Of a stretch of 64,000 nucleotides of DNA, positions 3,921 to 41,490 are shown in pieces. The stretch lies in the sequence record NC_042060.1. The stretch is one strand, 5' to 3'. The notes below the pieces were generated by a model, which was not told the DNA's origin, ran no database searches, and saw only the letters and a list, made by a program, of their open reading frames with translations. How positions within the stretch are numbered: position 1 is the first letter of the stretch; every line of letters begins with the position of its first letter. A program made the position numbers and the translations under genes.

Positions 3921-3938
3921 GCCTCCCCGAAGGGAGGC
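3921..3938 (-). terminator. intrinsic terminator
   Basis: Minus strand gcctccc-UUCG-gggaggc then TTTATGTTG. Confidence 0.8.
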
Positions 3939-28881: not shown

Positions 28882-31170
28882 ATGTTAAAAACTATCATTA
28901 AACTAGACGGTACTGAAGAAGCATACTCACCTGCTAAGATTAATGGTTGGGGTGAATGGGCAGCCCAACATCTTGGCGATAAGGTGGATTGGAGTAGTGT
29001 TGTGATGGATGCTGTTCAAGCTCTTGGTGATAAAACTTCATCACAAGAACTACAATTACAACTTATTGAAGAATGTTTAAATCGTAAGACATGGTCTTAT
29101 TATCTAATGGCTGGTAGACTATATGCGATTTATCTTCGTAAGAAGTTCTATGGTCTAAATGGCATCCCAACTGTTAAAGCGCTTCAAACCAGGATGCGTA
29201 AAGATGGTATCATTGTTAAATTAGATTATAGTAGTAAAGAATACGCTCAGATTGAAAAGATCATTGATCACGATCTTGACCTACTTTGTCCGCATTTTTC
29301 ACTTCATCACATTCGTGGAAAGTATGCTCTACGTAATCGTAAAACTGGTCAAGAATATGAGACTGCCCAGTTTGTATATATGCGAATGGCAATGGCTCTA
29401 GCTGAAAAAGAGCCAGCTGAAACTCGCATGACTCATGTGGAGAATTACTATAAACTACTTTCTAATAAAATTCTTAGTGCGCCAACACCTAACTACGTTA
29501 ACCTAGGTACTAAGCTTCGTGGTTTTGCATCATGTTGCCTATTTGCTTCTGGTGATAATGGTGTATCACTGGCAATGGGCGATTATATTGCTAACATCAT
29601 GACCCAATCATCAGCAGGCATTGGTGTTAACTTAATGACTAGGTCAATTGGTGATCCTATCCGTAATGGCCTAATCATTCACCAAGGTAAGAAACCATAC
29701 ATCGATGTAATTGGTAAAGCAGTAAGGGCTAACCTACAAAATGGTCGAGGTGGTGCTGTTACGTGTTACTACAGTGCTTTCGATCCTGAAGCAGATATGA
29801 TTACTCAGCTACGTAATCCACGTTCTACTGAGGATAGGAAGAACCGTGATCTTCACTATGCATTCCTAAGTAATAAGTTCTTTGCTAAGAAAGCGGCTCA
29901 GAAAGATGGCATGATCTTTGTATTCAATCCATTTACTGCTCCAGATCTACATGATGCTTTCTATAGTGGTGATATTGATAAGTTTATTAAGCTTTATGAA
30001 AAATATGAAGCGGATCCTAAATTTGAGAAAACTTATGTAAATGCTCGGGATCTTCTCAAATCAATGCTAGTTGAAGCATATGAGACTGGAACCATCTATT
30101 CAGCTCAAATTGATGAACTCAATCATCATACACCATTTAAAGAACCTATTTACAGTTCTAACCTATGCCTTGAAATCGCAGAACCCACTAAGCCTTACTA
30201 TCGAATGGAAGATCTTTATTCTAGTGAGGATCACGGGCGCGGTGAGATTGCTACTTGTTCACTGGCTGCTATTGCAGTGGATAACGTTCCTGATAAGCAA
30301 ACTTATGAAATGGCGGCTTACTACGCACTTAAGATGATTGACTATTGTATCCTTAATGCAGAGTATGCTTTCCCACACCTTGCACTAACCGCTAAGAATC
30401 GAATGAGTGCTGGTGTTGGTATCATGGGTCTAGCCACACATATGGCACGTGCTGGCCTTAAATATAGCAGCGATGCTGGTAAAGCTGAAATCCACTTCAT
30501 TGCTGAACGGCATATGTACTTCCTTATCAAGGCGTCACTTAAGATTTCTAAAGAACGCGGGAATGCGCCTTGGATTCATAAGACTAAATGGCCAGAGGGA
30601 TGGACTCCACGTAAGACTTATAATAAGTCAGTGGATACTATCATTGAAGGTGGCTTTGAAGAACTTTATCCATGGGATGAGCTAGAGAAAGAAATTAAGG
30701 AGAATGGTGGTATTGCACACTCCGTACTAGCTGCATACATGCCTGGTGAAGCATCATCTAAGGCACTAGGGTCAACTAATGGTCCATACCCGGTACGTCG
30801 CCTAATTCTTAATAAGACTGATAATGGTGCACGTGTGCTATGGGCTGCTCCATATGGAGATGATGACTCCTATGTGTATGAATCAGCTTATGATATCCCC
30901 ACTAAAGATCTTATTGATTGCTATGCCATTATTCAAAAGTGGACTGATCAAACAATCAGTGCGGACCTCTACCGACGCATTGTAGGTTCTGAAAAGATCT
31001 CTTCTAATGAAATGCTAGGTAATCACTTCTACATGGTGAAACGTGGAATGAAAACCCGGTATTATGTAAATCTAGAAACAGCAGCAGGACTTGATATTAA
31101 ATCACTTGAACGTGCTGTTGAGGTAACTAATACTGAAGTTGGGTGTGCAGGCGGTTCGTGCACTCTTTAA
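28882..31170 (+). CDS. nrdA: ribonucleotide reductase class Ia alpha subunit
   Basis: ATP-cone-like start IIKLDG, ASCCL, SSNLCLEI, TCSLA, TRYY, C-terminal CAGGSC; ATG 28882 preferred over 28831. Confidence 0.96.
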   Translation: MLKTIIKLDGTEEAYSPAKINGWGEWAAQHLGDKVDWSSVVMDAVQALGDKTSSQELQLQLIEECLNRKTWSYYLMAGRLYAIYLRKKFYGLNGIPTVKALQTRMRKDGIIVKLDYSSKEYAQIEKIIDHDLDLLCPHFSLHHIRGKYALRNRKTGQEYETAQFVYMRMAMALAEKEPAETRMTHVENYYKLLSNKILSAPTPNYVNLGTKLRGFASCCLFASGDNGVSLAMGDYIANIMTQSSAGIGVNLMTRSIGDPIRNGLIIHQGKKPYIDVIGKAVRANLQNGRGGAVTCYYSAFDPEADMITQLRNPRSTEDRKNRDLHYAFLSNKFFAKKAAQKDGMIFVFNPFTAPDLHDAFYSGDIDKFIKLYEKYEADPKFEKTYVNARDLLKSMLVEAYETGTIYSAQIDELNHHTPFKEPIYSSNLCLEIAEPTKPYYRMEDLYSSEDHGRGEIATCSLAAIAVDNVPDKQTYEMAAYYALKMIDYCILNAEYAFPHLALTAKNRMSAGVGIMGLATHMARAGLKYSSDAGKAEIHFIAERHMYFLIKASLKISKERGNAPWIHKTKWPEGWTPRKTYNKSVDTIIEGGFEELYPWDELEKEIKENGGIAHSVLAAYMPGEASSKALGSTNGPYPVRRLILNKTDNGARVLWAAPYGDDDSYVYESAYDIPTKDLIDCYAIIQKWTDQTISADLYRRIVGSEKISSNEMLGNHFYMVKRGMKTRYYVNLETAAGLDIKSLERAVEVTNTEVGCAGGSCTL

Positions 31171-31176
31171 GTGTAT

Positions 31177-31202
31177 ACACCCTCCCTTAATTGGGAGGGT
31201 GT
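31177..31202 (+). terminator. hairpin between nrdA and nrdB
   Basis: acaccctccc-ttaatt-gggagggtgt; 22-bp core identical to 32853-32874. Confidence 0.7.
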
Positions 31203-31270
31203 TATTCCCAATTTATACTAACCTCTATTATTTATTGTAAGAAATATTTTTAAATTGTAAAGGAACTGAT

Positions 31271-32434
31271 ATGTCTACTAAATCTCAACTACCAAAGAAA
31301 ATCTTCAATGTTGCTAAGAGTGATTATCATCTACCGGAAATTATTCTTGGAGATGATCCAGGTCTACTAGATTCAATTCACACTCATTATCCTAAAATGT
31401 GGGAGCTATATAAGCGTCTAAAGATGCTTGATTGGGATGAGCTAGAATTTGACTTTTCCACTTGTCTAGTAGAATTTGAAACGTGTGATAAATCAACTTA
31501 TGACATGATGATTAAGACACTGGCCTGGCAATGGGAAGCTGACTCTGTAGCCAGTCGTTCCATTGTTAATATTCTATCACCTGTCATGACAGATTCACGA
31601 GTATGGGCGGGATATGTACGTATTAATGATAATGAAGACGTACATGCTTTAACTTATTCTGAAATTGTACGTAATAGCTTTAAAGATCCTAAAGTTATTC
31701 TAGACGAAATTCTTAGGGTAGAAGAAGCACAAGAACGAATGGTTGCAGTAGCCCGCACTATGGGTGAAGCACATGACGCAGTTCATGCGTATGCTCTTAA
31801 TCAGGTACCCAATGATCAAGAACTTTACAATAAAGTATTCATGTTCTTCATCGCTCTATATTTCCTAGAACGTATCCAGTTCATGGCATCCTTTGCAGTA
31901 ACCTTTGCTATTGGTCGTACTGGTGCATTCCAGCAAATTGCAGCCGCTGTTAAGAAAATTGCCCAAGACGAATTCGAAATCCATGCACAATATGGACAAG
32001 AAGTTATTCGTGCACTACTGGCAACTGAACGCGGTAAACTCGCTTACAGTCAATGTAAAGATAAAATCATTGAACTACTATGGGAAATTGTAAAGACTGA
32101 AGTTACCTGGATTAATTATCTATTCTCTGAAGGTCGTGAACTAACTGGTGTTAATGCGACTAAACTTATTAACTGGGTACTTTTCAATGCTAATGCCGCA
32201 GCAACATTCCTAAGTATTGAAAATGATGTTGTAGAACAGTATCAAGTGGAGTTTAAAGAATCAGCTGGATTTGATTTTGTTTGGCCAGAGAAGAACCCAC
32301 TTCTTTATATGGAAGACTACCTAGATATTTCATCAACCCAAGCATCTCCTCAGGAAGAAGAGAAGCCTGATTACATGGTCAACGTTGTAAATGATGTTGG
32401 TGAAGAAGAAGAATTTGAGGTTGACTTCTTATGA
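31271..32434 (+). CDS. nrdB: ribonucleotide reductase class Ia beta subunit
   Basis: Di-iron ligand and radical motifs WEADS, EDVHALTYS, LERIQF, DEFEIH, C-terminal PDY. Confidence 0.96.
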   Translation: MSTKSQLPKKIFNVAKSDYHLPEIILGDDPGLLDSIHTHYPKMWELYKRLKMLDWDELEFDFSTCLVEFETCDKSTYDMMIKTLAWQWEADSVASRSIVNILSPVMTDSRVWAGYVRINDNEDVHALTYSEIVRNSFKDPKVILDEILRVEEAQERMVAVARTMGEAHDAVHAYALNQVPNDQELYNKVFMFFIALYFLERIQFMASFAVTFAIGRTGAFQQIAAAVKKIAQDEFEIHAQYGQEVIRALLATERGKLAYSQCKDKIIELLWEIVKTEVTWINYLFSEGRELTGVNATKLINWVLFNANAAATFLSIENDVVEQYQVEFKESAGFDFVWPEKNPLLYMEDYLDISSTQASPQEEEKPDYMVNVVNDVGEEEEFEVDFL

Positions 32435-32844
32435 TTAAGATTATCACATTCGTAGTTTTAATGTGGTCCACTGTCCTATTTGCAGCAACTGAAGTAAAAT
32501 CAACTACAGATGGTATTATTGCACATTCAGAATGTCAGCTAGTTGCTAAAGATAGTAGTGTTGTCGGCACTACTGTTGGAGGTGCGGTTGGAGCCACCGC
32601 AGGCGCTGTATTAGGTCGAGCAATCTTTGGTAAATCTGGAGGTTGGGTAGGTGGTTTAATCGGTGGTGCCGCAGGCGGCGCAGTCGGTAATAATGTTAGT
32701 GCTACTGAAACATTTCAATGTAAACTGATTGTTAATACAGATGGCAAGCAGTACATGGTTCAAACAGTTACCAATGAAAAACCAAAGGTTGGTGATAAAG
32801 TCACTGTTGTTGAAATGAATGATGGTACACGAGATATAATGTAG
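32431..32844 (+). CDS. glycine-zipper 2TM secreted protein (SlyB/YcfJ-like)
   Basis: Signal peptide MIKIITFVVLMWSTVLFA; GxxxG repeats VGGAVGATAGAVLG and GGLIGGAAGGAVG; C-terminal KVGDKVTV. Confidence 0.8.
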   Translation: MIKIITFVVLMWSTVLFAATEVKSTTDGIIAHSECQLVAKDSSVVGTTVGGAVGATAGAVLGRAIFGKSGGWVGGLIGGAAGGAVGNNVSATETFQCKLIVNTDGKQYMVQTVTNEKPKVGDKVTVVEMNDGTRDIM

Positions 32845-32852
32845 ACATAATG

Positions 32853-32874
32853 ACCCTCCCTTAATTGGGAGGGT
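32853..32874 (+). terminator. intrinsic terminator
   Basis: accctccc-ttaatt-gggagggt then TTATG. Confidence 0.75.
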
Positions 32875-32929
32875 TTATGCTAACAATTCTATAGCACTCT
32901 TATTAACAGTCATCAACGAGAGAGTAGAC

Positions 32930-34813
32930 ATGAATAAAATGCTAAACTTCCTAAACCGTACGCTATATAGCGGTACTGAAAAAGTATCTTCAAAAGCTAC
33001 ACCAAGTCTAGAACACTTTAAAACAAATGTTGAACAAGTAGATAAAAAGATTCTACAACCCTTTAGTACTAAATTTAAAACCATTCTAAAAGAATGTTAC
33101 AGTAATGAGGAGTGGGTTGAAGAACAATCATTTATTGAAGAACCTATTGATCTTGGTTCAGCTGCACGCGGTCTTACCGAGCGCGGTATTATGCGTGGTG
33201 ATTGGGGACGCTTAGCGCATTCCACTATTAAAGAAGCAGAAGGTATGATGCGTACTTATAGTGGTCGTCTAAATGAAGATATGGAGGCATCTGAAATTAA
33301 TGAAGTAATTCAAGATATGCCTTATAACTTCACAGCTGGCTCAGCTAATACTAGCCGTTTAGAAGAAGATGACTCTATTTTTGTTGAAGCAGATACAACT
33401 GTAGTTGAACCTCTGTCTAAGCAGACTCTGCCAAAAGTAGCAGAACTTACTAACCAACTAGTAGAAGTTTATAACCGAATCACTGAAGAATTTACAGAAA
33501 CTGGTATTGCTAAAGTTGAACAAGTTGAACAGCCAGCAGTTCTTGTAGCACTTGGTGAGATCATTAGTAGTTTTAATAAACTAATTGATGCTTCATGTGG
33601 TGCTCTACCAGTGGAAGAAACTGTTATTGTAGAGGAGGATCCGTTACCTGCCATTGTTACTGGTCCAACTACTGAACCCATTGATGGTGAAATTCCACCT
33701 GTTGATGCTATTAATAATTCTGCGGCATTAGAAGAGTTTATTGAAGAAGTACTAAGTACTAATCCAGAATTCATTAAATACCAAAGTATGAATGATAGTA
33801 ATATTGATTCATATCTAACTGGAGATGACTGGATTATACTAAAATTTAAAGATGGTTCTTATTATTTATACAATGCCCAGAGTGCTGGTGAAACAAATAT
33901 AGAAATCATGAAAGATATGGCCGAAACTGGTAGTGGTCTTAATGGTTTTATAAATCGAGTTATTCGTGGCGGGTATGTAGAGAAGTCCATCATTAATACT
34001 CCCGGTTTTATACAAGTCTCAAATGAAGGTCTTATCGACACCATTAAGAGTATCTTCGACTCTGGCCCTGAGATCAATCTTGATAAAAAGAAGAAAGCTA
34101 TTGCTACACTGAAAAGTACCTATGGTGATGCCAAATGGGTGGCAGAAGCAAAGCTTAAAACCGGCGAAGTAAAAGTATCGAGTTACGAGACGTTCGCGTC
34201 TAATGATCCTAAGACCGCAAAAGCCAATATCACTAATGCTGTAGCTAAAGCTGATCGTCACAACCAGAAAGTTCTGGATGAGAACAGTAAGATACTAGCC
34301 CCCGTGGTTAATCTGTTCAAAGGGAATGATTGGCAAGACCCTAAGAAAGTCGCTACTCTTCTGGCTGAATGGAAACCCAATGTAAAGACAAACTTCCAAG
34401 AACCCAAATGGCCAGATAATGCTGGTGCTAAGATTAAGTTGCTTGATGCTACCGGTATTGTGGAAGCAGCTAACGTTATCATTGACGTTCTGTCTAACAA
34501 CACTAAGACTATTGCGGACACTTGGGTAGCCCAGTATCCTGACCTATCTGTCAATGGGGATATCTACAAACATAAGCTATCCACTATTAAAGATAAAGAT
34601 GCTCTTGAGGATGTATATCTGCTGGCTAAAAGGGCCGATAATGCCATTCTTAACATTCATGCATCGTACGACGACGCTAAGGTTGAATCTGCATATCGAG
34701 TATTTGCTATCGACATGTTGAAACTAATGCAAGCATCTGTCAGTAGCTTCCCAAGTGGTTCAACCGTAGAGAACACCAATGAACGCAATACGGTCATTGG
34801 TATTGAAGAATAA
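32930..34813 (+). CDS. modular virion head protein (phiKZ gp303-like) with internal KTSC-like domain
   Basis: 627 aa; S/A-x-E sites (SLE, SNE, ALE); duplicated LKxxYxxxxW motif; KTSC-like segment. Confidence 0.7.
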   Translation: MNKMLNFLNRTLYSGTEKVSSKATPSLEHFKTNVEQVDKKILQPFSTKFKTILKECYSNEEWVEEQSFIEEPIDLGSAARGLTERGIMRGDWGRLAHSTIKEAEGMMRTYSGRLNEDMEASEINEVIQDMPYNFTAGSANTSRLEEDDSIFVEADTTVVEPLSKQTLPKVAELTNQLVEVYNRITEEFTETGIAKVEQVEQPAVLVALGEIISSFNKLIDASCGALPVEETVIVEEDPLPAIVTGPTTEPIDGEIPPVDAINNSAALEEFIEEVLSTNPEFIKYQSMNDSNIDSYLTGDDWIILKFKDGSYYLYNAQSAGETNIEIMKDMAETGSGLNGFINRVIRGGYVEKSIINTPGFIQVSNEGLIDTIKSIFDSGPEINLDKKKKAIATLKSTYGDAKWVAEAKLKTGEVKVSSYETFASNDPKTAKANITNAVAKADRHNQKVLDENSKILAPVVNLFKGNDWQDPKKVATLLAEWKPNVKTNFQEPKWPDNAGAKIKLLDATGIVEAANVIIDVLSNNTKTIADTWVAQYPDLSVNGDIYKHKLSTIKDKDALEDVYLLAKRADNAILNIHASYDDAKVESAYRVFAIDMLKLMQASVSSFPSGSTVENTNERNTVIGIEE

Positions 34814-34824
34814 CTTACTGAGTA

Positions 34825-34839
34825 TGTAATGATATGTAG
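34825..34839 (+). promoter_or_regulatory. TGTAAT-NN-TATGTAG motif (late-type TATG promoter)
   Basis: Exact motif also at 37051-37065 and 39218-39232 upstream of tRNAs. Confidence 0.6.
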
Positions 34840-34980
34840 AAATGATCCCTCCCCCTCGTTTCTACATTAGTCATAATAAATCGGAGCCAGTCCCCCTTCC
34901 AACTGGCTCCCAGAGAGTAAAACTCTTTGCTGGGCATTAATGACGATATATCGCCTCCCTTCGGGGAGGCTTTATATTTT
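34836..34980 (+). ncRNA. candidate structured small RNA with two C-rich loops
   Basis: Stems 34834-45/34856-67 and 34883-91/34902-10 with loops UCCCUCCCCC and CCCCCUUCCA; third stem; UUCG terminator. Confidence 0.55.
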
Positions 34981-34981
34981 G
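34953..34981 (+). terminator. intrinsic terminator
   Basis: gcctccc-UUCG-gggaggc then TTTATATTTT. Confidence 0.88.
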
Positions 34982-35033
34982 TTTTTACGTATGTATATTA
35001 AAATATGTATAAACAACATAGAGTAATTATAAA

Positions 35034-35486
35034 ATGATCAAAAATGAACTTTTACCAGGGCTAATCTATGCCCAAAAAGAATTTGATAAAATTGCAGCTA
35101 ATGTAAAAGACTATGATAAGTATAAAAGACGCGAAGCTGGTAGGGCAAGTGCCGTTTTAAGAAGTCTAGTGAGCAATATTGTAAATCAGAATAAACCATC
35201 CTCACTTGAACATGAAGGCAAAGTTAGTACTACTAATACTAATGAATATTTAGAAGAAGTTAATAATTACTTCTTTAACATTAATAATATTAAATTAATT
35301 TCTCCTAAACTCATAAAAGAGAAATTAACAATTGATCTAATGAATATTTATGTTAAATGGAATATGATTGGAGTGGCTGGCCGAAATGATGTGCCAATTA
35401 TTGAGCACAGAATTAATGATTGGTGCGAAGTGACCGATGTCTACATTAATGGTAATAAGATAACTTCTTTACAATGGCCACGTTGA
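35034..35486 (+). CDS. hypothetical protein
   Basis: 150-aa ORF. Confidence 0.75.
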   Translation: MIKNELLPGLIYAQKEFDKIAANVKDYDKYKRREAGRASAVLRSLVSNIVNQNKPSSLEHEGKVSTTNTNEYLEEVNNYFFNINNIKLISPKLIKEKLTIDLMNIYVKWNMIGVAGRNDVPIIEHRINDWCEVTDVYINGNKITSLQWPR

Positions 35487-35544
35487 ATTTAAAATAAGTT
35501 GTAATAAAATACCTAGCATTACATGTTATGTATTGAAGCACAAT

Positions 35545-35629
35545 GCCCGAATGGTGAAATTGGTAAACACAGAAGACTTAAAATCTTCCGGCTACGGTCT
35601 TGTCGGTTCGAATCCGACTTCGGGCACCA
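35545..35629 (+). tRNA. tRNA-Leu(TAA)
   Basis: Cloverleaf, long variable arm, loop CT-TAA-AA, GGTTCGAATCC, encoded CCA. Confidence 0.95.
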
Positions 35630-35638
35630 ATTTAAATA

Positions 35639-35714
35639 CGGAGTGTAGCGCAGTTGGTAGCGCGCCTGCTTTGGGAGCAGGATGTCGGGAGTTCGAGTCT
35701 CCCCACTCCGACCA
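35639..35714 (+). tRNA. tRNA-Pro(TGG)
   Basis: CGGAGTG acceptor, loop TT-TGG-GA, GTTCGAGTC, CCA. Confidence 0.95.
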
Positions 35715-35735
35715 TTTTAATAATAGGTAAATAGG

Positions 35736-36029
35736 ATGGATAATAAATGGATATCATGGGAACATCAAATTATAGGAACAGCTCTTTACGCTATTCTTAG
35801 TGACCCTGAATTAACTAATATTCAATTAGCTCAAGGCTTACACTATCTAACAGAAGCAAAGTCTTCTGTATTACATGTTTGTAATAACCATATTACATTC
35901 ACTGTAACCTATCCACATGGCACATTTAGAACCAATGTAATTAGAGAGTGCCCTGCTAGTGATACAAATACATTCAAATGGTCAGGTGTATTAGTCCGTC
36001 AAAAAGATGGAACATTCTTACCAGAATAA
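35736..36029 (+). CDS. hypothetical protein
   Basis: 97-aa ORF between tRNAs. Confidence 0.7.
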   Translation: MDNKWISWEHQIIGTALYAILSDPELTNIQLAQGLHYLTEAKSSVLHVCNNHITFTVTYPHGTFRTNVIRECPASDTNTFKWSGVLVRQKDGTFLPE

Positions 36030-36036
36030 ATAAAAA

Positions 36037-36113
36037 GGGCCTATAGCTCAGTTGGTTAGAGCAGGCGACTCATAATCGCTTGGTCGCAGGTTCAAGTCCT
36101 GCTGGGCCCACCA
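36037..36113 (+). tRNA. tRNA-CAT, most likely Ile2 (lysidine, reads ATA) rather than Met
   Basis: Loop CT-CAT-AA; body GAGCAGGCGACTCATAATCGCTTGGTC matches recalled bacterial ileX; C4-G69 and C5-G68 pairs. Confidence 0.9.
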
Positions 36114-36165
36114 TATACTAGCCTCCCACTTGGGGGAGGTTTTATACTGTCTCATTGAGGAAAAC

Positions 36166-36387
36166 ATGAATACAGTAATAATGTTGGTATTATCTATCAA
36201 AGTTGGATTATTTGGTTTCATTTCGACTAATGAAAGTAATATCCTATTTGAAAATAGGGAACAGTGTATTTCTCATCTGGATATTCTGGAACATAAATAC
36301 AAGTCTCTTGAAGTTATTCGAAATGAGAATACTCTAAAGATAACCGAAAGAGATAACCATTCTATTTATATTTTTAAATGTCTCTAG
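36166..36387 (+). CDS. small hypothetical protein, hydrophobic N-terminus
   Basis: ATG 36166 with GAGGA RBS; track start lies in a terminator hairpin. Confidence 0.7.
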   Translation: MNTVIMLVLSIKVGLFGFISTNESNILFENREQCISHLDILEHKYKSLEVIRNENTLKITERDNHSIYIFKCL

Positions 36388-36395
36388 GAAAATAC

Positions 36396-36683
36396 ATGGA
36401 ACATCAAGAACAAAAAGAACTATTGAGACAACCATTACAAACACTTTATAATCTTACTTTTAGTCCCCGTTTACGTAATGGAGCGAAGGCTCCCGATTGG
36501 ATTCACCTGACCGATGAAGTAACCCTATTCCCAAACGGATTAGATATTACAATCAACGCTGTTACACGTTGCATCAAATGGGAACTTATCGGCGAGGATG
36601 TAAGTAACATTACTTATGTTGAAGCTATGTTCTTTAATAAAGGTCTTAAAGCAGTTAAAGCCTATCTCAAACATACGGAGTAA
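36396..36683 (+). CDS. hypothetical protein
   Basis: ATG 36396 with AGGA RBS (alternative 36378). Confidence 0.7.
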   Translation: MEHQEQKELLRQPLQTLYNLTFSPRLRNGAKAPDWIHLTDEVTLFPNGLDITINAVTRCIKWELIGEDVSNITYVEAMFFNKGLKAVKAYLKHTE

Positions 36684-36685
36684 AT

Positions 36686-37033
36686 ATGGATCATCTAACC
36701 CCAACGCAGAGCGCTGTATATTTCACATTTATTAGCCCTGAGTTTATAAAGCTAACTCTTGTTGAATCTTTTGTAGCGATCCACAAGAAACATCCAGAAG
36801 TAAAGCATTGCGTTAAGAAAAAGATTAGTGCTAATGAAACGCAGTTTATCTTTATCTTCAAAGATGGGACTGATAATTTAATCATTACACGTAAAACTGA
36901 ACCTTGCCCTGAACTGGATAGCCCAGTAGGCGATAGTATTAAGTTGTCCGGCGAAGAACTTAAAAATATTCTTGCTAAGTACGATCGTCCCAAGGATGGT
37001 AACTATTTCAAGCACTGGACTGATCGCCCGTAA
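36686..37033 (+). CDS. hypothetical protein
   Basis: 115 aa, GGAG RBS. Confidence 0.75.
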   Translation: MDHLTPTQSAVYFTFISPEFIKLTLVESFVAIHKKHPEVKHCVKKKISANETQFIFIFKDGTDNLIITRKTEPCPELDSPVGDSIKLSGEELKNILAKYDRPKDGNYFKHWTDRP

Positions 37034-37050
37034 TAAAATATTACTGGTTA

Positions 37051-37065
37051 TGTAATACTATGTAG
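37051..37065 (+). promoter_or_regulatory. TGTAAT-NN-TATGTAG motif upstream of tRNA-Asp/Asn
   Basis: tgtaat-ac-tatgtag. Confidence 0.6.
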
Positions 37066-37085
37066 GAAGTCATGTCCATACGTTT

Positions 37086-37162
37086 GCGCTCATAGTTCAG
37101 TTGGTTAGAATACCCGCCTGTCACGCGGGTGGTCAGGGGTTCGAGTCCCCTTGGGCGCGCCA
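37086..37162 (+). tRNA. tRNA-Asp(GTC)
   Basis: Cloverleaf, loop CT-GTC-AC, G73, CCA. Confidence 0.95.
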
Positions 37163-37168
37163 TTTAAT

Positions 37169-37244
<76 letters not shown>

Positions 37245-37250
37245 TATTCT

Positions 37251-37274
37251 AAAGAGTAGCTTCGGCTACTCTTT
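37251..37274 (+). terminator. intrinsic terminator after tRNA-Asn
   Basis: aaagagtagc-UUCG-gctactcttt then TATGTTG. Confidence 0.85.
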
Positions 37275-37328
37275 TATGTTGCCATGGGTTATCTTATGAA
37301 TTAAAATGATTTACTTGAGAGCACACTC

Positions 37329-38336
37329 ATGTTTGAATTACTATTATCGCCAGATATAGGCGAAGAGTTACCCTTGGTTGGATTTAATGAAATTATTAAA
37401 TTAGGTGATCTACCTGTAGCGTTAGCTGGTACAATGTCATATGTGGATGGAAATACACTGTATGTTGGATCTGGTCATCATACTGAAGGACAAACAGCTG
37501 CAACTGTGTTCAGACGTTTTACCATATCGCCATTTGCCGATATAGGTGCAACTGCTTCTGGAACATTCTTACCAGGGGTATCTTTAGGATTTGGGACATT
37601 ACATAAGAATAACTTTATTGTTTATGGCGGTATTACTGGATGGAACTCGGCTGGTAATGGTGGTACGGGAACATCTAACTTTATACAACATTTTGATATA
37701 GCTACAGGCAATAGGGTTGAGCGATATAGTGGTCCCGTACCACTTTGGGGCACAGCCTCCGCATCAGATGGTAATGATCTTATTATGTGTGTTAACCCAG
37801 TTGGGGTAAATGCAATGCGGTTAAAACCATCGGGTAAGACATGGCTTAGTGGGCAAGATTATTCAGGTGGTGCTCGTTCAGGTCAACAGTTATTCTTTTA
37901 TAATGGTTACTTTTACCATTTTGGTGGTTGGGATAATACAAAGAACATACCTAATCTTGAAGTTTATCGATATAATGCAACTACCTTAATATGGGAGCAA
38001 ACACCTTGGATGATTATACCTGCTGATAAAGGAACAATCTGGCAAGGTAACGGTTATGTAGATGGAGAATATTTTAATTACCTTAACGCTGTTGATGTCG
38101 GCGGTGTAACTAAAATGTTTGCACAACGTTTTAATATTAGGCGCCGGAAATGGGCTGAACCATTTGAACTAGGTATCGGATTCCTTAATATTTCATCTAT
38201 AGCTAAAGGTCCGGATAATAGCATGATCATTGTAGGTGGATCTAAAATGCCAGTTGGTGGTGGAGCATATATGTTGAAAAGCCAATTGTTATCAGGTATC
38301 TATCAGGTAAAACTAGCGCCATTAATCATTGATTAA
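37329..38336 (+). CDS. Kelch-repeat beta-propeller protein, possibly virion-associated
   Basis: Repeats LYVGSG, FIVYGGITG, FYHFGGWD, MIIVGG; MFELLLS start recalls phiKZ-like structural proteins. Confidence 0.8.
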   Translation: MFELLLSPDIGEELPLVGFNEIIKLGDLPVALAGTMSYVDGNTLYVGSGHHTEGQTAATVFRRFTISPFADIGATASGTFLPGVSLGFGTLHKNNFIVYGGITGWNSAGNGGTGTSNFIQHFDIATGNRVERYSGPVPLWGTASASDGNDLIMCVNPVGVNAMRLKPSGKTWLSGQDYSGGARSGQQLFFYNGYFYHFGGWDNTKNIPNLEVYRYNATTLIWEQTPWMIIPADKGTIWQGNGYVDGEYFNYLNAVDVGGVTKMFAQRFNIRRRKWAEPFELGIGFLNISSIAKGPDNSMIIVGGSKMPVGGGAYMLKSQLLSGIYQVKLAPLIID

Positions 38337-38620
38337 AATAATAATATTTATAACTATTTAGATAATTATACTGGCACGATGATATTATGTAAGAGTACTA
38401 TAATAAAGTATTCTTAAATCTATCCACTAAACACACTCGGTGGTAGAACTTATTATAGAGTGTGTCTAAATGCCAGGGGTTTGCCACCCCTGGTTATATT
38501 CATTGTTACTATTATAAATTCATTTATAGATGAGAAAAGGTTTTATCACCTTTTCAAAATCGGCATTTAATTCCAGTTAAAAAACTGAATCTATGCTACA
38601 TTGTAATAAAGGAGTCTATT

Positions 38621-39133
38621 ATGACTAACTCTAATCAGTTTGTAAGAACTATTGTAAAGTACCAAGATATCCTAGATGCTTTAATTCAAAAAACGAATGA
38701 GAACTGGGTTAATTATCGATCTAATTCTATTGGTCATATTGTTATTCGTGAATACAGGACTGTTGGATTATTTGTAGGTCGGCAATGTGGTAGTACAACT
38801 GCATTGATTGAGTTTGCTAATCGTCATCCTGGCGAATGTCTAGCTGTATTTGTAGAAGATAAAATTAAACAGGCTGTACTGGCTAAGTTCCAGAATGCTA
38901 AAGATAATATTGTTTCTTGTTTAATTACACACCAACTCCGTAAATATATTCATCAACCTGAGGAATCATCTATTCAAAAAGATATTAAAGAAGAATTAAT
39001 ATCGTCTGTAAAATATATTCTTGTTGACAATGCCTCATTTAATCTGAACCTACGCGGTATCACTGATAAAGAATTTAACCAGTGGGTTGCAGATACTTTT
39101 GGTACAGAGGTAATGGTGGTTCGTTTTAGTTAG
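38621..39133 (+). CDS. degenerate P-loop-like protein
   Basis: VGRQCGST (Walker A Lys replaced by Ser) and YILVDNAS Walker B-like. Confidence 0.6.
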   Translation: MTNSNQFVRTIVKYQDILDALIQKTNENWVNYRSNSIGHIVIREYRTVGLFVGRQCGSTTALIEFANRHPGECLAVFVEDKIKQAVLAKFQNAKDNIVSCLITHQLRKYIHQPEESSIQKDIKEELISSVKYILVDNASFNLNLRGITDKEFNQWVADTFGTEVMVVRFS

Positions 39134-39217
39134 AATTAGTAACTTTGATAGTTTCTAATAAGATTAACTACACGTTATTTACATAATGTCATAACAAGAA
39201 ATAAATAATACTCAGAT

Positions 39218-39232
39218 TGTAATAATATGTAG
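39218..39232 (+). promoter_or_regulatory. TGTAAT-NN-TATGTAG motif upstream of tRNA-Asn copy 2
   Basis: tgtaat-aa-tatgtag. Confidence 0.55.
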
Positions 39233-39294
39233 TTATTACATATCTATATTAGGTTGTCAGTAACTCATCTCTAATATAAAATCGCCATAATTCT

Positions 39295-39370
<76 letters not shown>

Positions 39371-39414
39371 ATTCATAGTTTTAGATTTAGTTATATTTCA
39401 CTACTATGTAAACT

Positions 39415-39440
39415 ATAAAGGCAGCTAATGCTGCCTTTAT
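39415..39440 (+). terminator. intrinsic terminator
   Basis: ataaaggcagc-taat-gctgcctttat. Confidence 0.8.
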
Positions 39441-39501
39441 GTCGTCTTGTAAAAGTACCCAGTAGTTGAATCTTATAGCTGAATACAAATAGGGTAAAGA
39501 C

Positions 39502-39687
39502 ATGTCACTTAAAGCATTGCAAGATATAGTTAGTAGTGTTCCTACAAATGAACAAAAGGAACGATTAGTTAAAGTTCGGAAAACGATGGAAGAGCTAAAT
39601 GAGTCTATTAAGAATCAGATTCGTAATAAACGACCTAGTCAAGCTCTTCTCGACAAAACGATAAACTGGGGTACCAAGTATGGCTAA
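39502..39687 (+). CDS. small hypothetical protein
   Basis: 61 aa, helical. Confidence 0.65.
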   Translation: MSLKALQDIVSSVPTNEQKERLVKVRKTMEELNESIKNQIRNKRPSQALLDKTINWGTKYG

Positions 39688-39970
39688 GACATTAGTTCGT
39701 GCAAAGCTGATTACTGAGGCTGGTCAATGGATGTCGTCTGACTGGGAATGTGGTTTCCGTGCATGTCGATTCGTGAAACTTGGTAATGATCATGTAAACA
39801 TAAAAGACTTTGAGGCTATGATCACGGCATTCGAAGTTGGTGACATGTTAGTGATTTGGCCAAATGGGCTTAGAACTTCGTATAGTGTGGATAATTTCAA
39901 TAAGTACTTTTCCCATATCAAAGATGAATACCATGAGACTGATCTCCGTCCACTCTTTTACCCCAAGTAG
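39680..39970 (+). CDS. hypothetical protein
   Basis: 96 aa, overlaps the upstream stop. Confidence 0.7.
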   Translation: MAKTLVRAKLITEAGQWMSSDWECGFRACRFVKLGNDHVNIKDFEAMITAFEVGDMLVIWPNGLRTSYSVDNFNKYFSHIKDEYHETDLRPLFYPK

Positions 39971-40441
39971 TTGAGCTTATGATAACTATATTCGTGTATA
40001 AATACATTACATTCGTTATACCCTTTAATTGATTGAAATCAAGCTACATAAAAGTGATTGAATGGTCCATGTAGGTGATAATTTTAATAAAGGTAAAGGA
40101 TTTATCAGAGAATATCTCAGTGCATTTAGGTATTTTATCACTCGCCTATCTAAATCACATAAAGCCCTTTACCGAGGAATGTGAGAATGTTGGTTGCGAT
40201 TGATAATACTGGGACAGAATATGATGTCGACCCAACTGATGAAGTAGACGTAATGTTTGTATTTAGACCCACACTAAAATAACTTTATATGACTTAATAC
40301 CCCTCTATATAGAGTGGTCTATTTATAAGTAAAATTATACATAGAGTTAATATTATTTGTAGATTAGTTCTACACATAACTCAACTTGAAACCGGGTGTT
40401 AATAAAATTTAACACTACGGAAAACATAAAGGTGTATAAAA

Positions 40442-41071
40442 ATGGCTTTTCATTTTACTGAAGTAGATTTAAATGATTTTATCAATGAATCAGGTAAAGA
40501 CTTAAAAATAAATGTTGGTAAACAAACACTAGCAGTTTATGATATCGATAGGCTAAATATTGTTAATTCAACTATTAATAAACTAGTTTATAATGAACCT
40601 ATAAGTGAAGAACACATAGATGCATCACTTACAGATAATTCATTAAAAGAGCTTAATGATTATTTACTAAATGTTGGTGTTACTGAAAGCGCTAAAATGA
40701 TGATTGATGCTGTGTTAGAATTAAGCGATTATCATAAAAGTGATGAATACTTTAACCCAATGATGTATAAATTAAAAAGTATGCACACTAAAAATACAGA
40801 TGGTGTTTATTTGATATTTTTACCAACGCCTACTATCGATGATCAAATTAACACCATGCAAGGGTATATTATCAATAAATCCGGTAATCTCATTAGGACT
40901 ACTGTACAGTCATGGCGATTTGAGAAAATTGAATTCAAAGACTTAGCCAAACATGATAGACGTTGGTTATTTATTGAATATTACATTAATGTTAAACAAA
41001 CGAAAAATAATATAATCAAAGAGCAACAAGATGAATTAACTAAATTTATTTATTATAGTACTCTAAGTTAA
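40442..41071 (+). CDS. hypothetical protein
   Basis: 209 aa, AAGGTG RBS. Confidence 0.8.
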   Translation: MAFHFTEVDLNDFINESGKDLKINVGKQTLAVYDIDRLNIVNSTINKLVYNEPISEEHIDASLTDNSLKELNDYLLNVGVTESAKMMIDAVLELSDYHKSDEYFNPMMYKLKSMHTKNTDGVYLIFLPTPTIDDQINTMQGYIINKSGNLIRTTVQSWRFEKIEFKDLAKHDRRWLFIEYYINVKQTKNNIIKEQQDELTKFIYYSTLS

Positions 41072-41095
41072 AACAAATAAAAAAATAAATATAAG

Positions 41096-41118
41096 AGCTA
41101 GCCCCTAATGGGCTAGCT
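41096..41118. terminator. terminator between convergent genes
   Basis: agctagccc-ctaat-gggctagct. Confidence 0.8.
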
Positions 41119-41128
41119 TTATGTTATC

Positions 41129-41266
41129 TTACTCTGCTACATCTTTTACATCAGGTTTATTATTCCAACGTACTGCTCTCGCAATACCATACGTAAGAAT
41201 AAGAGCACCTACGGCGCCAATAGTGGTGCTAATAATAATGCCAAGAGTTTTTGGGTCGATATTCAT
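41129..41266 (-). CDS. small single-TM protein (45 aa)
   Basis: Below track cutoff; AGGA RBS; follows the early-promoter cassette at 41311-41350. Confidence 0.7.
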   Translation of the reverse strand: MNIDPKTLGIIISTTIGAVGALILTYGIARAVRWNNKPDVKDVAE

Positions 41267-41310
41267 ATTTAGTTTCCTATTTACAATTAATAGAAAATAT
41301 TACTTTTAGT

Positions 41311-41351
41311 AATATCAAGTTAATGATATACTGTTTAAATATGTTTGAATA
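41311..41351 (-). promoter_or_regulatory. early promoter cassette, copy 3
   Basis: 39/41 identity with 24166-24206. Confidence 0.75.
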
Positions 41352-41413
41352 TAACTTTATTTATTATAATAAATAAAATAATACTTTCATATACACTATA
41401 TGTAGAAGATTCC

Positions 41414-41490
41414 GCCGCTATAGCTCAGCTAGGTAGAGCAACGCACTTGTAATGCGTAGGTCCTCCGTTCGATTCGGAGTGGCGGCACCA
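41414..41490 (+). tRNA. tRNA-Thr(TGT)
   Basis: Cloverleaf, loop CT-TGT-AA, CCA. Confidence 0.95.

Follow-up and report, generated by a model that had tools for sequence, protein, structure and literature searches.

The window, meaning the whole 64,000-nt stretch of DNA that was analyzed, corresponds to bases 1-64000 of Pseudomonas phage PA7 (JX233784 / NC_042060, genus Phikzvirus). Within it, the gap between gp040 and gp041 was 220 nt long, contained a small RNA gene, and headed a cluster of seven tRNA genes (Table 1). A sequence-only reading of this DNA had set a candidate small RNA between the stop codon of a head-protein gene and a UUCG terminator, and both boundaries were present, as the stop codon of the gp303-type gene upstream and the terminator stem (34953-34970) downstream. 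The seven tRNA genes were called by ARAGORN at window positions 35545-41490 (Leu, Pro, Met, Asp, Asn, Asn, Thr). Over 30000-39000, the annotation of PA7 lists no tRNA feature, so the deposited record appears to be without tRNA annotation there.

In every homologous phage found, the small RNA lay directly 3' of the gp303 homolog, and in every genus the region headed by the RNA contained tRNA genes. The next feature downstream was gp302 in Phikzvirus, tRNA-Leu in Pawinskivirus, and the unrelated gene 374 in PhiPA3. A downstream gene kept across genera, the linkage by which attenuators and riboswitches are judged, was therefore not found; the conserved partner was the gp303 gene, upstream of the RNA. 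No terminator separated the gp303 gene from the RNA. The gp303 mRNA should consequently end at the terminator of the RNA, which would make the element the 3'UTR of the gp303 gene as well.

Between PA7 and phiKZ, together with about a dozen other Phikzvirus genomes, nucleotide homology started only at ~34822. This position is exactly that of the small RNA's promoter, so the RNA gene is bordered by a mosaic junction. Over its 3' part (window ~34300-34822), the gp303-type gene was a different allele in PA7 than in phiKZ, and the neighboring PHIKZ304-type gene formed two allele groups inside Phikzvirus (99% and 56% amino-acid identity).

Table 1. Features at the small RNA locus and one distant candidate partner, in window positions unless PA7 is named.
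Feature	Position	Strand	Description
gp040	stop at 34813	+	virion structural protein, PHIKZ303 homolog (gp303-type)
Promoter region, phage non-virion RNA polymerase	34814..34836	+	double TATG, 34823-34826 and 34833-34836
Hairpin 1, DNA inverted repeat	34834-34845 with 34856-34867	+	12 bp; loop TCCCTCCCCC at 34846-34855
Small RNA	34836..34976	+	~141 nt; ortholog of the phiKZ TU237/T131 transcript as judged from locus, length and sequence; covariance model 154 bits
Hairpin 1, RNA, 5'-terminal	34836-34845 with 34856-34865	+	loop UCCCUCCCCC at 34846-34855
32-codon ORF	34842-34940	+	judged non-coding
Three-way domain	34870..34944	+	GUCAU 34870-34874 with AUGAC 34940-34944, enclosing hairpins 2 and 3
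Hairpin 2	34883-34891 with 34902-34910	+	9-bp stem; loop CCCCCUUCCA (DNA CCCCCTTCCA) at 34892-34901
Hairpin 3	34911-34929	+	CAGAGAGU-AAA-ACUCUUUG
Intrinsic terminator	34945..34985	+	GCCUCCC-UUCG-GGGAGGC 34953-34970, then U-rich tail; equivalent of phiKZ T131
Second TATG past terminator	34990-34993	+	
TATG	35004..35007	+	likely promoter core of gp041 (putative function); kept in all Phikzvirus rows aligned
gp041	ATG at 35034	+	PHIKZ302 homolog
Kissing candidate hairpin	PA7 127066-127093		between PHIKZ177 and PHIKZ176 homologs; 10-bp stem, loop UUGGAAGG

Promoter and ends of the transcript

TATG, its G being +1, is the core of the late phiKZ promoters, which the non-virion RNA polymerase uses (Yakunina et al., 2015, PMC4666361). 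The predicted +1 of the PA7 RNA is G34836, the G of the second TATG. Of the two TATG motifs before hairpin 1, phiKZ retains the second only. The promoter sequence TATGTAATGATATGTAGA was kept in 12 phages of two genera and also in PhiPA3. A start at a TATG of the class seen at the tRNA genes had been proposed from the letters, and it held up: nearby tRNA genes start likewise, and the motif is the published phiKZ promoter core. The sequence upstream of tRNA-Asp (TATGTAATACTATGTAGGAAGTC, window 37052-37074) closely resembled the small RNA promoter (TATGTAATGATATGTAGAAATGA), both containing a double TATG, and a TATG lay 12-17 nt upstream of tRNA-Thr and tRNA-Leu as well.

Counting 141 nt from G34836 leads to position 34976, in the U-tract. 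An intrinsic terminator should release the RNA at this point, which is 6 nt past the terminator stem. The length of 141 nt is that of a known phiKZ transcript. From an ONT-cappable-seq map of phiKZ transcription, Putzeys et al. (2024, microLife, PMC10914365) describe TU237, a 141-nt intergenic RNA upstream of PHIKZ302 with its own start site and the terminator T131. Northern blots confirmed the short RNA, which was reported as abundant, and also a form that reads through the terminator.

The match in phiKZ spans 273945-274163 of NC_004629 (minus strand). In PA7 as in phiKZ, the locus is flanked by the genes of the PHIKZ303 and PHIKZ302 type and lies on their strand. The two RNAs were 97% identical over 143 nt without indels (phiKZ L002:3015-3157) and scored 152-154 bits with the covariance model. 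They shared the locus, the TATG start, the terminator, and the predicted length of 141 nt, with no substantial difference. On locus, length and sequence, rather than on base-by-base published coordinates, the PA7 RNA is thus assigned as the ortholog of TU237/T131. The discrete small RNA of ~140 nt anticipated by the sequence-only reading accordingly has a counterpart in the northern-confirmed transcript that PMC10914365 gives for the 97%-identical phiKZ locus. Initiation at TATG and phiKZ-type intrinsic termination of an independent RNA of ~141 nt are either demonstrated or strongly supported.

As a transcript, then, the RNA was already known (phiKZ, 2024), and its discovery as such is not new. 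The text of PMC10914365 makes no mention of the C-rich loops or of covariation, and it reports neither a function nor conservation outside the genus. No function assignment for the phiKZ or PA7 RNA was found in the later literature searched.

Fold, conservation and distribution

RNAfold gave -60.9 kcal/mol for the + strand (z = -6.5 against 200 dinucleotide shuffles), compared with z = -4.0 for the - strand (dinucleotide shuffles). Both C-rich loops had an unpaired probability of 1.00 in the ensemble. The stems that had been read from the sequence, one of 12 bp and one of 9 bp with their loops and a third stem, were all present on the + strand; as RNA, hairpin 1 has a stem of 10 bp, which begins at +1 if the start is G34836. 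The helix closing the three-way domain was predicted in all three clades when each was folded alone, and it is less certain because it is not positionally alignable. The motif UUNAUGA (window 34936-34944), just 5' of the terminator, was kept in all three genera and forms the 3' strand of the closing helix in PA7. A small ORF at 34940-35026, which runs through the terminator, looks conserved only because the terminator is conserved.

C-rich, G-free loops of 10 nt on stems of 9-12 bp were found only in hairpins 1 and 2 when the 64-kb window was scanned for hairpins, and the same combination of loop and stem was limited to these two hairpins in 264 kb of the PA7 genome. Five other C-rich loops in the window were 6-7 nt long, on stems of 7-9 bp. 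The hairpins and their C-rich loops are real and are more than chance. The region at window ~38385-38500 is the equivalent of a published phiKZ ncRNA candidate downstream of PHIKZ298. It contained a TATG start, three hairpins and a terminator (z = -5.1), and no C-rich loops; such loops are thus no general trait of the phage's small RNAs.

Searches by blastn and pattern scan recovered homologs from Pawinskivirus-like phages (HPP-Temi, PA1C, PS119XW, phiLBG22, phiHQ, and BRkr) and from PhiPA3 (Miltoncavirus). Judged from these matches, the RNA is common to three genera of P. aeruginosa jumbo phages, namely Phikzvirus, Pawinskivirus and that of PhiPA3, a distribution that is newly reported here. 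Nucleotide identity to PA7 across the RNA was 64-68% in the other genera. The gp303 proteins were only ~27-36% identical, and the PHIKZ304 homologs 45-66%.

RNAalifold, run on a plain MAFFT alignment of nine distinct sequences that was not fitted to structure, returned the same four helices with 35 pairs, five of which had compensatory changes on both sides. In the model-fitted alignment, which leans towards structure, 97.8% of cells were paired, against 43-48% with partners slid, and seven pairs had changed on both sides (reached in 0 of 500 shuffles). The RNA strand is fixed as + by numerous G-U pairs. Four pairs of the hairpin 1 stem were changed on both sides, including G-C to A-U within Phikzvirus. 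The hairpin 2 stem was 100% paired in the nine distinct sequences, and two of its positions were changed on both sides (U-A to C-G; G-C to A-U or C-G). One pair of hairpin 3 was A-U, G-C, and U-A across the three clades. The architecture was common to the three clades when each was folded separately: the 5' hairpin is followed by the closed three-way domain that contains hairpins 2 and 3, and a linker then leads to the terminator. Covariation across Phikzvirus had been suggested as a check on the fold, which is backed by compensatory changes across three genera and hence beyond Phikzvirus.

The core of loop 2, CCCUUCCA (8 nt), was invariant across the three genera; its stem covaries and the linkers diverge. 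Loops that varied while their flanks were kept would have spoken against the candidate RNA, and loop 2 was instead its most conserved segment. Loop 1 retained only CUCC across genera, reading UCCCUCCCCC in PA7, UCCUUCCCCC in phiKZ, UCACUCCU in Pawinskivirus, and CCUACUCCU in PhiPA3. Motifs of the type CUCC, CCUCC or CCUUCC were exposed in every clade. In the Pawinskivirus homologs (L003:3057-3237, L004:3032-3210), hairpin 3 is separated from the terminator by an insertion of 45 nt that exposes CCUCCUU. This insertion carries UCCCCUCCUUUCA and UCUUUCUCCUUG and is partly predicted as single-stranded; its CCUCCUU is identical to the anti-Shine-Dalgarno heptamer of 16S rRNA.

In Phabio, Viktualia and 201phi2-1, phages that infect other Pseudomonas species, the covariance model found no member in the examined stretch surrounding the gp303 homolog (~5.6 kb in each of the first two, 27 kb in 201phi2-1). 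It likewise found no member around the tRNA-Leu of 201phi2-1 and no paralog elsewhere in the 64-kb window. Pattern scans of viral contigs returned only PA7, PhiPA3 and one chance match, and those of metagenomes and bacterial genome collections returned nothing or GC-rich chance matches, none of which was confirmed by the model. As far as tested, the RNA family does not extend beyond P. aeruginosa jumbo phages. Rfam 15, searched at E up to 10, gave no family match for the PA7 RNA.

Coding potential and pairing partners

The 32-codon ORF that overlaps the RNA had been noted as having no ribosome-binding site. Its ATG lies 6 nt from the 5' end of the RNA, inside the 10-bp stem of hairpin 1 and without a Shine-Dalgarno sequence, a position that counts against a translated gene. 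The ORF exists in PA7, KTN4, Wadjak 1, and PA7_Y12, and PhiPA3 keeps this frame open for 21 codons over hairpin 2, which would speak for a small proline-rich protein. Against such a protein, the ATG is replaced by ATA in phiKZ and T2P and by ACG in PS119XW and phiLBG22, so that the start is lost in four of nine distinct homologs. Frame or length varies in the other genera, the ORF being 7 codons long in HPP-Temi and lying in another frame in PA1C. Where phiKZ has lost the ATG through a G-to-A change, the opposite arm of the stem carries a matching C-to-U change, which shows selection on the RNA. With start, frame and length not conserved, the ORF is not under selection as a protein. The small-protein reading was rejected and is regarded as extremely improbable.

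Ribosome-binding sites in PA7 were short and A-rich, with AGGA in 35%, GAGG in 20%, and GGAG in 16%. G-rich sites amounted to 0-3% (GGAGG 1%, GGGG 2%, GGAAGG 0%). The loop-2 complement UGGAAGGG was not enriched in the window (24 matches, 30 expected). Duplexes between the loops and the ribosome-binding sites of PA7 mRNAs were barely better than background, 4-5% of the phage sites reaching -10 kcal/mol or lower, and duplex energies did not differ between a putative early gene block and the rest.

When the whole PA7 genome was scanned for duplexes, the best complements of loop 1 were the G-rich 3' arms of the phage's terminators, which are buried in stable hairpins. The terminator motif, CCYCCC-loop-GGGRGG followed by TTAT(G), occurred at ~32-40 sites in PA7, including window positions 3921, 34953, and 57971. 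Since the terminator stem of the RNA is this generic phiKZ motif, a special role for its sequence was rejected. The stereotyped phiKZ motif ending in TTAT is already described in PMC10914365.

One hairpin elsewhere in the genome, between the PHIKZ177 and PHIKZ176 homologs, was considered as a kissing partner. Its loop, UUGGAAGG, is a perfect complement of CCUUCCAA in loop 2, and the hairpin, which has no U-tail, was 100% conserved in Phikzvirus genomes. It was rejected as a conserved target because PA1C keeps the stem and not the loop, and because it is absent in PhiPA3. A G-rich loop in gp111, a phosphohydrolase gene (PA7 68562-69218), was set aside as coding sequence and probably a chance match. 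Resemblance to the Era-binding 16S rRNA sequence GAUCACCUCC was dropped because the GAUCA part is not conserved across genera. No convincing or conserved phage target of the loops was found in PA7.

Interpretation and relation to known RNAs

The explanation we favor, tentatively and at a probability of roughly 40%, is a trans-acting non-coding RNA of ~141 nt acting through its C/U-rich loops. The RNA is started by the phage non-virion RNA polymerase at the TATG G, just after the gp303-type gene, and it displays C/U-rich single strands on stable stems, with CUCC in loop 1 and the invariant CCCUUCCA in loop 2. The loops may then pair in trans with G-rich RNA without needing a chaperone, in the manner of other sRNAs with C-rich loops. 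Their likeliest partners would be found in the host, either as GGAG/GGAAGG Shine-Dalgarno-like stretches of P. aeruginosa mRNAs or as other G-rich RNAs. Ribosome-binding sites of the phage itself, which are A-rich and seldom G-rich, are less likely partners. If the loops do pair with RNA, a host target fits better given that no convincing phage target emerged, and the limitation of the family to P. aeruginosa phages also points to the host.

Comparison of the sequences suggests a loop-borne function, for which the invariant loop 2, its covarying stem and the divergent linkers were counted. The variable downstream neighbor, together with gp041's own likely TATG past the terminator, argues for action in trans rather than in cis. 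Counted against pairing in trans were the lack of a convincing phage target, the partial conservation of loop 1, and the making of the RNA inside the phage nucleus, from which its export is putative. The earlier proposal of a phage riboregulator is therefore retained in part: the discrete RNA of ~140 nt, the TATG start, the non-coding ORF and the conservation of a loop all stand, and the silencing of mRNAs with strong GGAGG or GGGA sites is a putative role, such sites being scarce among the ribosome-binding sites of PA7 itself.

The principal alternative in the literature places the element in cis. Putzeys et al. interpret the phiKZ RNA as conditional termination in the 5'UTR of PHIKZ302, where they see short and full-length read-through forms (PMC10914365). 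The RNA would then be a prematurely terminated by-product, and read-through of T131 would set the expression of gp302 and the tRNA cluster, a view in keeping with the tRNA-containing region that follows the RNA in every genus. We consider it unlikely, because the gene immediately downstream differs between genera, candidate TATG promoters lie past the terminator in PA7 and PA1C, and the invariant apical loop would be left unexplained by a simple attenuator. Nor does the RNA contain a G-rich segment that could form an antiterminator with the C-rich 5' arm; the Pawinskivirus linker is 50 nt long and C/U-rich, and, co-transcriptional folding aside, no alternative antiterminator pairing was seen in the minimum-energy or centroid folds of any clade. 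The invariant 8-nt loop on a covarying stem is, on the other hand, typical of a specific recognition site, and this also suits a decoy or scaffold whose loops bind a KH- or S1-type host protein, Rho, or a phage RNA-binding protein in order to titrate or recruit it. The abundance reported for the phiKZ RNA in PMC10914365 and the failure to find a phage RNA target favor this reading. It too is improbable in our judgment, as no candidate protein was found and CUCC/CCUUCC is the classic pairing seed of sRNAs with C-rich loops.

Part of the evidence would also fit an element without any function as an RNA, whose main role would be to give the gp303-type mRNA a stable 3'UTR and a terminator and to set that gene apart from the tRNA genes. 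It always lies directly after the gp303 homolog with no intervening terminator, and in Phikzvirus the mosaic junction coincides exactly with its 5' boundary. A purely structural role, as 3' end or insulator, nevertheless appears quite unlikely. The RNA starts from a conserved promoter of its own, with a primary start site that has been mapped, protection from exonucleases needs no sequence-specific conservation of loop 2, and the gp303 proteins are only ~27-36% identical, against 64-68% nucleotide identity for the RNA. Under a further, equally improbable proposal, the exposed CUCC/CCUCC/CCUUCC motifs would mimic the 3' tail of 16S rRNA, which they resemble, and so block G-rich host sites and spare the phage's. 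In its general form, the idea that the loops act as anti-Shine-Dalgarno sequences is a plausible hypothesis.

Small RNAs with C-rich loops that pair with G-rich Shine-Dalgarno regions include 6C of Mycobacterium (PMC6486639), LhrC of Listeria (PMC4132741), and RsaA/RsaE and RNAIII of S. aureus (PMC3961350). 6C pairs without a chaperone (PMC6486639), and the short, interrupted U-tail of the PA7 RNA would be atypical of an Hfq-dependent sRNA. In common with 6C, RsaA/RsaE, LhrC and RNAIII, the PA7 RNA presents at least two C-rich, G-free motifs in hairpin loops on stable stems. It has no sequence or model homology to 6C, RsaE, LhrC or RNAIII, none of which gave an Rfam match at E up to 10, and unlike them it is encoded by a phage of a Gram-negative host and made by a phage polymerase in a phage nucleus. 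The alphaproteobacterial 'cuckoo' RNA ar14 (RF02344) has a similar design of tandem hairpins with CCUCC-type loops and was the only Rfam family aligning over hairpins 1 and 2 (34829-34914). Membership in ar14 was rejected at 19.9 bits, against a gathering score of 58.8 (E = 0.56).

The layout of the locus recalls sRNAs of the DapZ/MicL type, for which a separate promoter lies at the 3' end of a coding gene whose terminator they share. The PA7 RNA likewise has its promoter at the very end of the upstream gene and should share that gene's terminator. It differs in starting 23 nt past the stop codon rather than inside the coding sequence, and in its use of the phage's own polymerase, and it is not known to depend on Hfq.

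Regulatory RNAs are only starting to be credited to virulent phages. Relative to the main text of PMC10914365, the present analysis adds a covariation-backed fold, conservation next to tRNA genes in three genera, and an invariant 8-nt loop, which offers a handle for mutagenesis and target capture. The variable downstream context, the non-conserved ORF and the negative scans for phage targets are also new. If it is true that the loops act on G-rich ribosome-binding sites, a nucleus-forming phage would for the first time have been described as taking over translation initiation at the RNA level. Should the RNA prove to mimic the anti-Shine-Dalgarno sequence, a jumbo phage would be biasing host translation towards phage messages with an RNA encoded beside its tRNA genes. 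Loops that bind a protein would instead indicate an unknown host or phage factor.

More speculative still is a role of loop 1 at the phage's own terminators. Its sequence is that of the 5' arm of these stereotyped hairpins, and it may modulate them in trans. The terminator tail often creates a TATG right after the hairpin, so that the two may form a terminator-promoter cassette.
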